Of a DNA stretch of 64,000 nt, positions 25,089 through 58,537 are shown one piece after another; position 1 is the stretch's first letter; each line of letters starts with the position of its first letter. This stretch comes from Oikopleura dioica. Lineage: Eukaryota > Animalia > Chordata. The DNA is taken from contig OU015569.1 of NCBI GenBank assembly GCA_907165135.1, positions 6,014,001 through 6,078,000 on the forward strand. The letters run 5' to 3'. A model generated the notes under the pieces. That model worked only from the letters and a program-made list of their open reading frames with translations. It was not told the origin of the DNA and did not search any database. The position numbers and the translations under genes are program-made.

Positions 25089-28000
25089 ATGGGTCTGCGC
25101 CGGAGTATCGGCTTCATCTCCGGCAGTGGGTTGACTATTGGTAGGCTTTTGATCCTTCATTTGTCATTTTTATGTGCATTTTAGGTGCAATGGTTGGCAG
25201 CGGGATTTTTATGTCTCCCGGAGAAGTTCTAGGGGCAGCTGGTTCTGTCGGAACGTCACTTCTAATGTGGGGCACCTGCGGACTCATCTCTTGTGCTGGG
25301 GCTCTTTGTTTCTTAGCCGAGTTTCGCTCATTCTTGACATTTCACAAAATGCATGTCTGTTTCCAACGCTAAACTCTTCCGCAGAGCTTGGTCTAATGTA
25401 TCCAGAGTCAGGGGGAGCCTATGTTTATATCAACGAGGCTCTTGGAGATCTCTTCGCATTTTTGTACGCGTGGTCGTCGATTCTCATCGTTCGCCCGGCG
25501 TCAGGTAAAATTCCAGAGTCACACTGCTCCGAATTTAAATTCTAGCTGCAATCGGTGCCGTTTCATTTGCTGACTATATGTGTGAGGTGTTTTACGAGCC
25601 AGGCTGTGCGCCGTCGCTTTTGAAGAAGCTTATTGGAATGTCTCTCATTCTCTTCCTTGGAATGGTCAACGCCAAGAGCCTGAAACTCTCAAGCCTAGTT
25701 TCTCGCGATCAACAACTTTAGTTTAGATCGTTTTTAACCTGAAAATTTGAGTGGAGCCGTCGCCACTTGGATTGAACGAGCGTATTTTATCTTCGAGATG
25801 CGCTCTCGATGAGACCAGGCGTATTTACACCAAATAAAAAGTTCGGTGTATGATTTGACTGGAATTAGGCTAGCGCGGCGTCATTCAGCGTGCGTTAATC
25901 GTATTTGGTTGGAAACAAACCCGCAGAATTAGCTTCACGAGTGAGGAATAAAAATGGGCTCCCTTTTTTGGTATTCATCCGTTAATGAATTATTTTAGTC
26001 AAGTTTATTTCTGTAATTTCGTGCGGGCACAAATTGATCCTCTTTGAACCTATAAAATCGTAAAGAGAAGAATGTCTCTCTTTTTCTATGGAGATAAGAG
26101 ATGTTAACCCTAATCACCATTGCCGGCCATCAAAGGCCACTTTCGAAGCTGGAAATGTACTCTTGAATATTCCTTCCGTTGTGTTCCTTTCAAACCCCAG
26201 TAACATAATTTTCTTGCTAACTCGAAACGGTGAAAATAAAACGAATGCAGAAACTTTTCCCAGCTGGTTGAATAATCTATCGACGGTCGGGAAGGTGTTG
26301 GCTCTCATAATTATCATTATCTGTGGAATCGTCAACCTGTTCAAGGGCTACACCGAACATTTGCAGCAAGGTTTCGAGCCAATAGAAAATGACTTCAAAA
26401 TATCTGTCGGTGAGTGTTTCCTAGTGTAAGGCGAGAACGGACTTTAATATACATTCAGGTGCACTTGCTTCAGCGTTTTACGCAGGAATGTGGAGTTTTG
26501 ATGGATGGGAGGCATTGACAAGGCTTTTACAAGAATGAAATAGCATGCACTCACCAATTGAGAATGCACACGTCAAGAAATGAAAAAAGTCATTTTCAAA
26601 AAAGCCTTCTTTAGAACTCTGTGGGGGAAGAAGTGGCTAATCCTGGAAAGACAAAGTTTTATATCCTTCATGAAAGGCCGTGTAGACAGTCGGAACAAAG
26701 TACGATGTTTAAAACTTAACAAAGAATTTTCCAAGAGTCATTTGAAACACGTTCTAAGATTCACTTTAGTTTGGAAGTTTCTTTTAGAGCCAGATTCGTA
26801 ACAAATCTAGAACAGTAAGCAGCACAGCCGTCCCTTTTGTCTCGCCACGGATATAAACGAAATGAAAAACGGTAGAAGAGCGATTTATTTATATCCGTTT
26901 TAAAGATTCTGTACGTGCTGACAAACGTAGCTTATCTTACCCTGCTTTCGCCGACCCAGGTGGTGTCTTCGGACGCACTGGCTTTTTCTTTCGCAAGTTT
27001 GGGTCGATCCAATCTTTTTAAACAAGTTATAAGAGATGTTTAACCCGTGAAAACGCAAGTACTCGTCCGAGTTTGCGCTTTTTATGGCCGCTTCCGTTGC
27101 GCTGAGCACGTTTGGAGCTGCAAATGGGCATGGGATAATATCGAGATCACTGTGTTTCTATAAAGAGAATCGCACTCTAATCTAAGGGTATACTGCTCAT
27201 GCTGGTAAGAGTTTAGGCCTTTTTGTACCTTAATTCATTCGGCTGGTGCGGCTTATCAGTTTGCGCTAATCCGATCTATTGGTCGAAATAATCGCCGCTG
27301 CGGCACACTCGTCGAGTTGCCAATAAATCCAAACCGCGGAAACGGACAAACCAAACTCTGCTGTGCTTTGTATATTGTACGAATATCAGCCCGGCGCTCA
27401 CTTCTACAATAAAATTCTACGAGTATCCCTTTCTAAAGAAATTGTCTGACTGGAGCGCGACTGACCTTAGCTGGCGCTAGAAATGGACATCTGCCGCGGA
27501 TGCTTGCTTATTTGAGCATTACTGAGCGACTGCCGATTCTCTCGGTGATTTTTAACTCAGGAGAGGCTTGTAAAACAAGAAGCCTTTTTATAAAAAGCTT
27601 TTATAGCCCGAGAAGCTCTTTCAATAATTCTCCTCATTCCAGAAAACTCGAATTTCTTAACCCTTGTAAAGTAAGTCAAGATAAGTGAAGCCAGGGCCGC
27701 TGATTACTTCGCAGACGTTAATCTTCGCTCAAAATGCAGCTGCGAACTTTTTGGTGACCGCATTTTTCAATCTCAAGTTCTTTTTAATTTACCCTGACGC
27801 GTGGACTCCTCTTGGGTTTCAAAGCAAAATTCTAGCTTTACGGGCTTCACGATCTGGATATTCTACGGAATGGCGTTCGCCGCAGTTTTGATTCTACGAT
27901 GGAAATGTCCCGATATTCGCCGCCGGTACAAAGTACCCCTGACAAAGTTTTTACAATTTAGTCCTTGAACTGCACAAATCTCGCAAAATGAGCGGCCGCT

Positions 28001-28399
28001 CCCTTGATATCGAAAAGTTAAACGTTTTCGTCGCGCATTACTAGAACATAGTGTCGATTCGAGGGCGCCGCTTTCCGGCAGAGATCTTTGAAAAACTGGG
28101 CGCCAGATACTTCCGATTCTTTGCGCTCTTGTTGCGCTTTTTATGACCATAGGAAGGGGTTTCACTGCAGTAATATTCATTAAGCAGGTGCTCTGAAACC
28201 AGTAAAGCACCGATCGTCGCCAGTCCGGAAATCGAGTATTTAGGAACGCGTTTCAAAACACCTCCTTCGATGATGCTTTTGACGAAATGCTAATTTAAAT
28301 TTTTGAATTTTCGAAAAGTTTTGAAATTCGGGAAAACCAGTGGTGTGCGGAATCATTGCTGCCGGCTTGCTAATTTACATTCCCTTACGGCTGGAATTC
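25089..28399 (+). CDS. SLC7 L-type amino-acid transporter light chain (b0,+AT/LAT-like), at least 17 introns, last exon not located
   Basis: MGLRRSIGFISGSGLTIGAMVGSGIFMSP, GALCF.ELG...SGGAY, AFYAGMWSFDGW, EEVANPGKNFPR, VALSTFGAANG..TGARL..AGARNGHLP, IWIFYG and RYKVP are all APC/LAT signature motifs. Donor dinucleotides: GT x5, GA x3, GC x1, GG x1 (tentative), CC x3, AC x3, AA x1. Confidence 0.92.
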
Positions 28400-31096
28400 G
28401 TAAGTTGCATAATTTTAAATAATTACCATCGCAAACAAACTTTTCACAATTCAGCTATTCAAATATTCACAGTATATTATAAACAATATTCGCGCAATTT
28501 AACCAGCAAAAAACAATTGTCATACTAATGAAAAATTTTTAATCCGCTAAAAAAACTTAAATTTCGAATAGAAAACGAATTTTTTGCGAAGAGAAATAAT
28601 ATCGATTATATTCTGATTCTTGGGGCTGCAAGCGCGAGAATTATTCGATTGAATTCGGTACAGTTCCCTTTTCAAGTACTACGCCCCACTACTGCTTTTT
28701 GTCGAGGCAGGTGCGCATTTCGCCAACCGCTATTAGAATTTCGGCAGTGGCGGTAATATTCGCCACCAGAAGGCGCCAAGCGTCAGCTGTTGCATCAATA
28801 AAGAGACAGCCCGAGTTTATATGCCGGCTTCGACGAGGGCTAAGTTCGCCTCATAAATTTCCGTGTTTCGAAAATTGCCGACGGTGGATTTAAACGGCAC
28901 CCTCGCGGGGATAAGGAATTTAGCCCCGCTGCCTAAATCACTCCACCAGTCACTGTAAAATCAGGCGTTTCATCGGCCCATGCTCAGGACGGCCTTGCTG
29001 CCTTTTAATTCTTATTTTTAGTCGTTTTCGCTGGGAGTACGTGCAATTAACTGGATAGAAAAGCAATTACAGGTTAGCCTACCTTTATATTTTCCAATTT
29101 TATTTTGATAAAAATACTATCACGCAGAAGAACGTTTGCCACCGAAACATATAATTTAGCTTCTGCTCGAGGTAGCACCATACGAAAAGCTAGCCAGCGA
29201 GTAAAAGAAAAAAAGAAAGCAGACTTTGAATTTTGCAAATTAACACTTCTGAATAAAGATTGCTGAGCGGTCCTAACACCGCCCGTGACAGAGTTCTTTG
29301 GTCCAGCGCTTCGAAAAGAACAGTTACAGATAATCTAATTAGCCAAATAAACAGCCAGTGCTACTTCTTTTATCAGCGAAGTTAAGCTGCCCAAAGAGAG
29401 TATCTCCGTAGATAATCTGAAATTGTGACACTCTCCTATTTCCAGAATCTATCAAAGCAGATGATCCGGCACTCGAGCGTATCAGAGGATCTTCCATCTC
29501 GAATGTTCATCCTTGGCGCGATCCGTTGCGGCGTCGCGTCACTGTGGCAAGTGAGCTGCAGTTATCTCGAGTTCTATCTTGGCGGAGCGAGAGTTCAGGG
29601 CGAACTGCGCGTGCTGACCTCGCTGCCGAATGCGATAAGACTGCCTTCTGATTTTGCGAGCGTGTGATCTGCGTTGCGCCTGTTTACGGGCGCACCCTTG
29701 TTCATCGGATTAAAACGAAACTTTGGAAGGCGGTTTTTAGTTTTTGTTTGGTAGCAAAGACAAACTAGTTTATTGTGTGATGCGCGACAAAAAATGGGCC
29801 GTCGGTAGCAGAAGTGATTTTGCGAACTATTACGTAACAAGTTACAAAAAAGATAGATTGTCGAAATAATAGATCCCAAGCAGACACAAGTCAAGAAATG
29901 ACAGAAAAAGTAATGGCAAAGCACGTGAGCCGGATTTAAACGGTTAAAGGAGGGTGGTTGATTATGGATAAGAAGAGAGTAATAATATTTATTAAGAGAT
30001 AGAAGACAGAGTGAGAGATAGAGTGATGAACGGTAGCTGGTGTTGGTCGTTGGTGGGGTTCGATCGGATTGGTGCGATAACTGGTGTTTAATGAGATAGT
30101 ATGAGTGATTACCGCAGTTGGCTTCTGCGTGCCTGAAGCCTAGGGCCGGGCGGACAGAGTGCCCGAATCCAGCCACACCTTGGGGCAAGGCACGACCTGA
30201 AATTATCACCAGAGCAGGCGGGTGCTGGACGAGTCGGGGCACGCGGCAGAAGCCAGCGTGCAGCTCGGTGCGGCTGCGTGCGCGACTCCTCCTGCACTCG
30301 CCCGCGCTGCTGTGATCCGGGCAAGGTGCATCTTTGCTAAAAATATATAAAATTGAAATATAATTCTACTATACAGTAATTTCCATTTCTGACTCGCCGC
30401 ATGTTGTCTCGCGCCACATTCACTATAGTTAATATGTAAAATATATAGAATTTAATTAATAATAATAAATCGATACTGTTAATGAATGCGAACAGCGCGA
30501 GCGTTCTAGTGTGGCGCGTCGGACATGTCGTAGTACCATAGCTCCTGTCCAATATAAATCATAGATATGTAATATGAAAAATATTGCTCGTTATTGGACA
30601 AGAATTATGCTAGTGTGTGGGCTGCGAATAATTTTTTTACAAATATCTGCGAATAACGCATTTTTGAAATAATGCGAGTACCACGCGATCGATCGCGTTA
30701 CAGCAGCAGAATTGCGTGTTTTTTGATGTAGTTATAGATTTGATCGGAAATTAAATAGGGTCGTAGGTTGGTTTCGTCCTGTGTGGTTTTAGTGTGTAGG
30801 TTTGTCTGGGTTTGTTTTGATTGGTGCGTGTGTTTTTGGTGGTAGGCTTGATATAATGGTGTGACGAGCTAATGAACGAGTTTTTTGAACAATATTTGAA
30901 CTTTTTGAAAAAAGCGAATTGATGAATAAATATCTGTAGTGTGCCTAAAGCGTAGGTTGATATATCCGGGTTAGCCTAGTGGCTAGTTGACTATAGAAAC
31001 TGGAACTGTGCGTGGGTTGTTGGTGTTGTAGGCGTCGTTTCTTCAGAGTCGATATAGCCAATCAGATTCTTCGACGGGCTAGGATTCTGGCAGGCG

Positions 31097-56988: not shown

Positions 56989-58537
56989 CTAATGCATCGT
57001 GACGAGAAATGTCTCTCTGTGCCATTGGCCGACGCGGTTTTTGAGCTTCTTGAGGAAGACCTTTGACTTCGGATCGGTGGCGCAGATTCTCGTGTGTCCG
57101 ACTTCCTCGTAGTTTTGAAGTCTGCCTCCGTGCAGCTTGACCTCCATAATTTCCAGATAGATGCCAAGCATGTCGCGGTTCTAAATCACAAACTCAAGAG
57201 CCTGAAGTTCTGTGGTGGTTACCTTTTTGTATACTGTCGAATTCAGATGAAAAGAGAACTGGTGTCCAATGTCAGCACGCCTAAATCAAATTATAATTCC
57301 CTTCCGCTACTTTTTATCTTTACCTTTTCTCATTGAGCTGCACAGCTTCCGATTTGAATCTGATGCTCTCTTCGAGTGGCCAGAGCATCGCGCCAACTTG
57401 CACAAGTTTTGCACCCGCTGGTAAGTTGAACACGCTTTCCACGACGACTACACATGAAATAAGTTCAAGTGGAAGAATAACTCACTTACTTTCGAGAATA
57501 ATTGTCTGAGCCGCATCGGGATCGACACTGAGCCGCGCGCTTACTTCAATACCTCCACGGTAATAATTTTTGAAGGTATTTTTGATTTGCTGAACGAAGA
57601 AACAGCGGACAGTCTTGTTTCGGAAAGCATGACTACTAGCATCTAAAGAATTATCAGGGCCTATCTCAGAAACCAGCTTTACCTATTAATAGTTCTCCGC
57701 AAGTTTCGTTCGAGAAAAGGACTGCCGTCTCTTTCAGCTTTATCTGCACATAGTTCAAGCCCTCCCAAAGCTGCCGTTTTAACGTTACTGGACAAAACGA
57801 TAATTTCATCAGTCCGTTGCCGAGTGGCACCATTTCGCTAGGGTCTAAACGTTTTTTCTTGCCGGAAGGAATGTATTTCAGCTTCAAGTGCGGCTTTATC
57901 AAACTGCTAATGATGCAGTCCTCAATCACCAGAGAGAAGCTACCATTCTCGACCGGAAAAAAGCCGACCTTCAGCGAATTTCTCGGTTCTTCTTGGCTGA
58001 GGGCTCCCGTAGGACGCAGAGGGTCCTTGAACAGCTTCTGTGGTGGAAGCTTACGGCTATCCAGTCTCCGCGTAGGAATAAGCTCGTCATCGAGAGAGAC
58101 AGATCTCTGACGCTCGAGCTTCTTCCTCACTAGTTTCTCAACCTGAATCGTTCATTAATACACTGGTTTTCATGTGAAACTCACATTCGGAGTCGAGCGC
58201 AGTTCATTTACTCTACGTGGACTCGGCTTTTGTGGACTGATGAATGGCTGCTTGTTCTTGCCAAGATCTTCAGCGAACACGCTGTGAAAGCTCAAACTGT
58301 CAACGCGCGAGAAGAAGCGGACCTCCCGGCGGTCGGTTTCAGTCGATGGCTCAACAGGCGCTCGAATGCAGTTACTCAGTGTGAACCTGGTCGGCTAAGA
58401 GAGTGTTGTGTAAGCTCAGAGAACGTGCATAGTTTTACCTGACCAGGTATCCACTCCGCACGCTCGATCACAGTTTTTATGTGATCTTTTTCTCTCTTCT
58501 CTAATTTCGAAATATCGACAAAAACATTTCTCGGCAT
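56989..58537 (-). CDS. Divergent synaptotagmin-like protein (SHD1-like N-terminus plus tandem C2 domains)
   Basis: Exon 1 MPRNVFVDISKLEKREKDHIKTVIERAEW resembles the Slp-homology helix. C2A-like ORF 57666-58130. C2B-like end IYLEIMEVK...EEVGHTRI...VGQWH. Confidence 0.62.

Follow-up and report, generated by a model that had tools for sequence, protein, structure and literature searches.

The question raised by this locus is where seven introns of one gene are cut, and whether introns beginning with C or A are spliced at all in Oikopleura dioica. The analysed stretch of 64,000 nucleotides (nt; hereafter the window, contig OU015569.1, positions 6,014,001 to 6,078,000) lies in the X-specific region of O. 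dioica OKI2018_I69, and contains a gene for an SLC7 light-chain amino-acid transporter. The gene model has 16 introns: four GT-AG, one GG-AG, one GC-AG, three GA-AG and seven that do not start with G (N1, N2, N3, Id, Ie, If and Ig; hereafter the non-G introns). The standard register places the 5' cut after an exonic G, so that the intron starts with CC, AC or AA, and the 3' cut after AG. The first-pass annotation of this DNA had stated that each of the seven can be shifted one base to the left with the same mRNA. This is the case, as the final base of the exon and the final base of the intron are both G in 7/7, and the shifted ends that it listed (GC..CA, GC..CA, GA..TA, GA..AA, GA..CA, GC..AA and GA..CA) were reproduced exactly and in that order. 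According to the orthologous loci and the signals around the cuts, the seven are probably real non-canonical introns that evolution has retained in a functional SLC7 gene, and they are probably cut at the conventional places.

The exon model was derived from frame-wise translation, from tblastn of full-length homologues (found by a one-exon query) and from two orthologous loci in metagenomes. The orthologue set L003-L006 stems from a closely related, O. dioica-like lineage whose exons are 72-82% identical and whose upstream gene is syntenic. The orthologue L007, located by a degenerate DNA pattern in metagenomes, belongs to a far more divergent, AT-rich Oikopleura-like relative, and covers the whole gene and downstream genes. 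Single exons of the host gene match LAT1, LAT2, xCT, b0,+AT and y+LAT chains with E down to 9e-9. The residue spacing of the exons agrees with that of SLC7 homologues, and the family motifs are present at the expected spacing. PF13520 (APC-fold family) is found on the annotated fragment P0001, which is Oidioi.mRNA.OKI2018_I69.XSR.g15012 on OU015569.1 of assembly GCA_907165135.1. The frame was open over 1320 nt in the first exon model, and the corrected model of 17 exons is also in frame with no stop.

Five of the seven junction sites (N1, N2, N3, Id and If) correspond in L007 to uninterrupted coding DNA of the model's exact length and of similar sequence. The N1 junction encodes ALCFL-E-LG, and L007 reads ALCCLELG without interruption. 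The N2 site is uninterrupted with equal spacing in L007 (KYSTWISN) and in L001. The sites of N3 and Id fall within one coding run of L007 from DGWDSL to FPRVI. The NP..Y spacing around the micro-exon 26725-26744 is 21, as compared by eye with P0113 and P0025. The L007 counterpart of the 22-nt micro-exon, TSIPAVT, is joined directly to ILYILTN. The two remaining sites, Ie and Ig, are occupied by a non-G intron in L007, as are those of N1 and N2 in L004. The L007 intron at the same codon as Ie reads atg^AT..AG or GA..TA (the caret marks the cut, and lower-case letters are exonic), with a terminal stem z-score of -3.8; the L007 intron at the Ig site (L007 5541-5678) has the donor ttg^ATATTTGG. 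The N1 site in L004 holds a non-G intron, tag^AA..AG, and the N2 site in L004 holds an aag^CG..AG intron whose termini form a perfect inverted repeat of 13 bp (z -7.1). The coordinates of the gene, the seven introns and the other introns are listed in Table 1.

Table 1. Features of the SLC7 light-chain transporter gene, in window coordinates. Caret, cut position; lower case, exon; z, score of the terminal stem.
Feature	Position	Strand	Description
SLC7 light-chain (LAT/xCT/b0,+AT-like) amino-acid transporter gene	25089..28399	+	17 modelled exons
Intron N1	25317-25384	+	68 nt, tag^CC..AG^agc; equivalent registers AG..GC, GC..CA
Intron N2	25694-26263	+	570 nt, aag^CC..AG^ctg; registers AG..CC, GC..CA, CT..GC
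Intron N3	26518-26614	+	97 nt, ttg^AC..AG^aac; registers GA..TA, CA..GA
Micro-exon	26615-26650	+	36 nt (NSVGEEVANPGK); contiguous with neighbours in L007
Intron Id	26651-26724	+	74 nt, aag^AC..AG^aat; registers -4 to +1 including GA..AA
Micro-exon	26725-26744	+	20 nt (NFPRVI + TG); FPRVI identical in L007
Intron Ie	26745-26822	+	78 nt, ttg^AA..AG^cac; register GA..CA
Micro-exon	26823-26844	+	22 nt (C + TAVPFVS)
Intron If	26845-26905	+	61 nt, tcg^CC..AG^att; register GC..AA; L007 uninterrupted
Intron Ig	27942-28106	+	165 nt, ctg^AC..AG^ata; registers GA..CA, CA..GA
GG-AG intron	27002-27059	+	L007 uninterrupted, equal length
GC-AG intron	27128-27438	+	stem z -2.1; L007 uninterrupted, equal length
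GA-AG intron	27561-27615	+	cag^GA..AG; fixed by L007 orthologous GA-AG intron and protein MFNTAISII
GA-AG intron	28153-28207	+	tag^GAAGGG..AAG; L007 uninterrupted FMVIAPVV
GA-AG intron	28244-28340	+	tag^GAACGC..CAG; stem z -3.0; L007 GA-AG intron at same site
GT-AG introns	25141-25184, 25505-25545, 26410-26458, 27671-27835	+	no significant terminal stem, z +0.9 to -1.5

The 5' ends of the seven introns are CCGAGT, CCTAGT, ACAAGG, ACAAAG, AAACAC, CCACGG and ACAAAG, and the 3' ends are CAG, TAG or AAG. In order to compare the two registers, ten non-G introns were used, the seven of the window and three orthologues. A flank matrix was trained on 18 G-start introns of the same gene from three lineages. 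It covers exon -3..-1, intron +3..+6, acceptor -5..-3 and exon +1, and the two terminal dinucleotides are excluded. Read in the standard register, the ten donors score +25.1 bits, versus -54.6 bits in the shifted one, and the flank totals are +3.3 versus -63.3 bits. The exon -1 G is present in 10/10 non-G introns in the standard register, in 0/10 in the shifted register and in 16/18 G-start introns (Fisher ~5e-6, calculated by hand); its share in the G-start matrix set is given as 82%, and every intron of that set ends with AG. All ten non-G introns end with AG in the standard register. In the shifted register the ends become CA, TA and AA, and the penultimate A is lost. These signals make it likely that the standard register is the one used.

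The first-pass annotation had further proposed that the shift restores donors already known in Oikopleura. This proposal is not supported by the flanks. The shifted GA donors are preceded by TT, AA, TT and CT; an upstream AG occurs in 0/10 cases and a downstream A in few. The AG^GAA flank of O. dioica GA donors, with an upstream AG and a downstream A, is highly conserved (PMC7072748), and the true GA introns of this gene and of L007 keep the upstream AG (cag^GA, tag^GA). At the N3 site, L004 has a GA donor, ctg^GAATGGCTTTT, which aligns without a gap to ttg^ACAAGGCTTTT of the window. Therefore, the orthologous cut lies after the G. The CCGAGTTTC of N1 is equal to the GTGAGTTTC of a candidate GT-AG intron at 58130-58184 on the minus strand, with CC replacing GT. 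This candidate intron of 55 nt (GTGAGTTTC...GAGAAACTAG) also shows GAGTTTC/GAAACT pairing of its ends like N1. No single register has a G as the first base, the exon -1 G and the AG end together.

The ambiguity of one base is a generic by-product of two ordinary signals, and is not special to the seven introns. The same -1 shift is possible in 8/9 G-start introns of the gene, and in 16/18 when those of L004 and L007 are added, because the letter favoured at exon -1 and the final letter of the 3' AG both happen to be G. As nearly all introns of the gene are shiftable, and GT-AG introns are never read as GG..TA, the ambiguity alone is no signal. The remark in the first-pass annotation that the shifted introns never begin with GT is right in number (0/7 here, 0/10 with the orthologues) but has little evidential weight, because a T after the exonic G would make a competing canonical donor one base upstream, with a frameshift, in either reading. 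Its logic was correct in two other respects. The pair of first G and last G is broken in either register, and cDNA alone cannot tell the registers apart because the mRNA is identical; the two registers predict that opposite G residues are retained in it. Target-site duplication as the source of the ambiguity length found no support: the repeats are 1-5 nt and are similar in canonical introns.

All seven introns have complementary ends, with the 5' arm starting at about +3 to +7 and the 3' arm ending about 6-9 nt before the 3' cut. The stems were scored as duplex z-scores against shuffles. The values in the window are -2.3 for N1, -2.7 for N2, -5.2 for N3, -1.8 for Id, -2.4 for Ie and -4.7 for If, and If has a perfect terminal stem of 11 bp. 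When the orthologues are included, the terminal stems of non-G introns are 6-13 bp long with z from -0.9 to -7.1. The mean z is -3.65 for non-G introns (n=10), -1.81 for GA, GC and GG introns (n=8) and -0.34 for GT introns (n=10), and non-G introns differ from GT introns with p = 0.00065. The stem is kept in orthologous introns despite unrelated sequence, as seen in L004, where the perfect repeats measure 12 bp in N1 and 13 bp in N2, and in the 10-bp stem of L007 Ie. In the seven and the orthologues, the stem lies 0-6 nt away from the 5' cut and 4-10 nt away from the 3' cut. Because these distances are variable, the stem resembles a clamp that joins the two sites, and not a ruler for an endonuclease.

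A mechanism can be proposed on this basis. A permissive U2-type spliceosome, which already takes GA, GC and GG donors, may also accept donors starting with C or A. It would recognise the seven sites through what is left of the donor context (A/G^..RAG-like), together with the AG, and the terminal RNA stem would assist by holding both splice sites together. The stem would be strongest exactly where the donor is weakest.

Several observations weigh against the reading of seven genuine introns cut in the standard register. Four RNA runs under the species label gave five partial reads from a diverged lineage, none of which joins across the seven introns; splicing at the seven junctions is a prediction from homology. 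The acceptor-flank score leans mildly to the shift (-21.9 bits standard versus -8.7 bits shifted), and the flank matrix is small, with 18 introns of one gene. For the three CC introns, the C-G pair of first and last bases is far from isosteric with G-G (6.54 for tWW and 5.41 for cWH), and the shifted G-A pair is nearer to G-G (2.22 for cWH; Table S2, PMC13326754). The AGT at +4..+6 of N1 and N2 sits in the stem arm, and may reflect the element family, not pairing with U1/U6. The first intron base of the seven is read from sequence signals, not from lariats.

The non-G ends might be an artefact of the gene model, that is, the real introns might be ordinary G[TACG]..AG introns nearby and the junctions might be wrong. 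Every in-frame option with a G start and an AG end within 36 nt was enumerated. Such options exist as GA-AG at N1 (FLALG), GC-AG at N2 (four additional amino acids) and GT-AG at Ig (three fewer amino acids), and a combination of GA-AG and GT-AG is possible around the micro-exons. Moreover, two other apparent non-G introns of this gene (28148 and 27555) proved to be GA-AG. However, the equal-length alternatives lose conserved residues such as E, and the others alter family-fixed spacing. The FLALG option at N1 drops the E present in all aligned homologues and orthologues except P0101, and GT-AG, the sole G-start option for Ig, would delete three residues including the conserved VP. L004 N1 has no G-start alternative and keeps the same junction. 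Across the five uninterrupted sites, L007 has the length and the residues of the model, including the E of LELG, which is invariant, the spacing of KYSTW, and that of NP..Y together with the positions of NFPR and P-x-V-[ST]. We regard an artefact of this kind as very unlikely. It is still less probable, to the point of being hardly credible, that the gene is a decaying or unexpressed copy whose 'introns' need not be spliced. The public annotation consists of only two fragments, and no reads from the OKI2018_I69 lineage were found in the four RNA runs; both points speak for such decay. Against this stand the open frame of 17 exons with no stop, the syntenic locus conserved in two other lineages, and the few reads of the related lineage, which cover orthologous exons and two exon-exon junctions.

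If the introns are real, they might still be cut in the shifted register, with starts of GA or GC, and with the second step cutting between the A and the G of the AG to give ends of CA, TA or AA. A spliceosomal 3' cut that does not follow the last base of the recognised AG would then exist. The mRNA would be the same, the ten cases all start with GA or GC, dinucleotides known as O. dioica donors, and one first/last pair, G-A, would suffice for every case, with the lower cWH isodiscrepancy to G-G (2.22 versus 5.41 for C-G). The stem geometry is divided: the 5' offsets are slightly nearer to those of GA and GC introns in the shifted register (about 4.1 versus 4.0, calculated by hand), the 3' offsets fit the standard register slightly better, and both are too variable to decide. 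The shifted reading amounts to a G[A/C] donor that has no exonic support, a 3' cut one base inside the AG and a G-A first/last pair, and this combination seems unlikely. It carries the -54.6 bits of the donor flanks and the missing exon -1 G and AG^GAA context, and by the gapless alignment of N3 the GA donor of the orthologue lies one base further right. A G must follow the cut in 10/10 cases, with no stated reason besides AG recognition. The penultimate A, which AT-AC introns also keep, is lost. At the 3' end of the major Fritillaria classes AG/AC and AG/AT, YAY is almost invariable (PMC13326754). On these grounds we consider that the shifted register is probably not used. A further explanation is an atypical or non-spliceosomal excision guided by the helix, such as that proposed for Euglena, in which the stem, and not U1/U6, sets the cuts. 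Terminal stems are significant in all seven introns and in their orthologues but not in GT-AG introns, and the borders are variable, in agreement with such excision. However, the stem-to-cut distances are too variable for a ruler-type endonuclease, all the non-G introns end with AG behind an exon -1 G as spliceosomal introns do, and the weaker stems of GA, GC and GG introns form a continuum with spliceosomal introns. In addition, the larvacean Fritillaria removes all of its intron classes by the U2 spliceosome (PMC13326754). Excision set by the helix is therefore rated as quite unlikely.

N1 and N2 share both termini, CCNAGTTTC ... AAACTYTTCC.CAG, and N3, Id and Ig have the 5' end ACAARGYTTTTAYAA in common. 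Few further copies of the shared termini are present in the window. Since the termini are shared and five of the seven introns are absent from L007, an origin like that of introners or miniature inverted-repeat transposable elements (MITEs), of the kind described in Fritillaria, would fit. The pattern suggests two small intron families (N1/N2 and N3/Id/Ig) that may have been propagated as mobile-element-like elements.

The N1 and N2 introns of L004 (2035-2494 and 2807-3646) are longer than those of the window, 460 and 840 nt versus 68 and 570 nt. Repeated palindromic units of the GCGAAGCTTCGC type fill these L004 introns, which are bounded by perfect inverted repeats of 12-13 bp. A block of ~100 nt in N2 (26078-26178) is 78% identical to L004 3323-3427 and L005 1525-1629, and the rest of the intron is unalignable. 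The block contains an indel of 8 nt and is therefore non-coding; it has no Rfam match. The Rfam scan of the window and of intron N2 gave no match, hence there is no small nuclear RNA gene here.

Non-canonical introns of O. dioica are known as G[ACG]-AG, which make up about 11-12% of introns, with GA-AG as the commonest class (PMC8008620, PMC7072748). The tunicates other than borealis were grouped as GT/AG plus GV/AG (Soo et al. 2026, PMC13326754). Five introns of the Oikopleura G[A/C/G]-AG type adjoin the seven in the same gene. The seven resemble them in the 3' AG, in the exon -1 G and, in this gene, in the terminal stem that is absent from GT-AG introns. Unlike them, the seven have C or A as the first base in the standard register; in the shifted register they have the G, but without the AG^GAA flank and the cut after the 3' AG.

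In Fritillaria borealis, the intron termini include all 16 first/last pairs, with A-G at 4%, C-G at 2% and G-A at 2%, its spliceosome is U2-type only, and larvaceans have no U12 machinery (PMC13326754). Its introns carry inverted repeats at their termini, occupy lineage-specific positions and are of transposon-like origin (PMC13326754; Henriet et al. 2019 cited in PMC11282704). Copy numbers of the genes for splice-signal-binding proteins are plotted in Figure 2E of PMC13326754. The main classes are AG/AC and AG/AT, with YAY before the 5' site and at the 3' end, and the mapping of borders required an extra sequence signature because gaps in cDNA alignments are ambiguous (PMC13326754). The seven introns are similar in their non-GT/AG termini and terminal inverted repeats; the absence of five of the seven from L007 and the families of shared termini seen by eye may be a further parallel. 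They differ in that the 3' end is AG, not AC or AT, and in that the exons end with tag, aag, ttg, aag, ttg, tcg and ctg, not with YAY.

The nonconventional introns of Euglena have variable borders and ends joined by a short near-terminal stem, and their exact borders are often undecidable because of repeated letters. They lack GT-AG borders (PMC12501133, PMC11170887). Unlike the seven, they belong to a protist, their excision machinery is uncertain, and they are not known to have a constant 3' AG or exon -1 G. In AT-AC introns spliced by the U2 machinery, a non-G first base is tolerated if the first/last pair is isosteric (A-C; PMC13326754). This rescue is inapplicable to the seven, which end with G and not with C. 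Features of U12-type introns, namely AT-AC or GT-AG ends, a ATATCCTT-like 5' motif and a TCCTTAAC-like branch site, were not found in the seven introns (the 5' motif was compared by eye). The L007 orthologue of Ig has a length-preserving 3' end, ..TTTAC^gtg, and with this end it would possibly be an AT-AC intron free of the register ambiguity. The other readings of this orthologue are a TAG acceptor 24 nt upstream, which adds eight amino acids, or GA..TA.

Among the G-start introns, the RNA reads of the related lineage give TTTATGAC + GCTAGCGCC at the intron 28153-28207. The junction of the GT-AG intron 27671-27835 agrees with a loose end in that RNA. Matches between the RNA reads and the window, at 95-99%, are confined to short conserved pieces of exon (27838-27872 and 28107-28147); this confinement indicates that the RNA comes from another cryptic lineage of O. 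dioica, not from the Okinawa line, to which OKI2018_I69 belongs. A CA..AG intron at 28148-28202 and an AC..AG intron at 27555-27612 were rejected, as L007 and the enumerated alternatives led to GA-AG at 28153-28207 and at 27561-27615, respectively. Because both of these apparently unambiguous non-G introns are GA-AG, the gene has no non-G intron free of ambiguity.

The public annotation (25089-28722) breaks the transporter gene into models of 134 and 184 amino acids, and the 134-residue model loses half of exon 2 through a false GT-AG intron. Apparently, the non-G introns were unusable by the gene predictor and the annotation was split. Past exon 17 (28400-28510), the frame is open for ~35 more codons and runs through a GTAAGT. 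The gene would end beyond 28399 either by read-through or after one further GT-AG intron, and L007 ends there without an intron. A related-locus search of the metagenomes and a word search with a 56-residue piece found no 3' half of the gene in other lineages.

Cleavage inside the AG is disfavoured by the sequence signals, and the predicted stem-clamped non-G introns are the interesting part of this locus. By comparison with Fritillaria, the putative non-G introns ending with AG are an extension of a known larvacean phenomenon, and the register problem is a known caveat of mapping. The non-G introns are 7/16 of the modelled introns of one conserved gene, and their sites persist in other lineages. 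If the standard register is true, O. dioica splices introns that start with C or A and end with a 3' AG, beyond the GT/AG and G[ACG]/AG introns described. Their first/last pairs would be C-G and A-G, which are predicted to block the second step according to classical work and isostericity, and the terminal stems would be the likely compensating feature. The breaking of the gene in the public annotation would also be explained, and O. dioica would stand nearer to Fritillaria on a continuum of spliceosome permissiveness.

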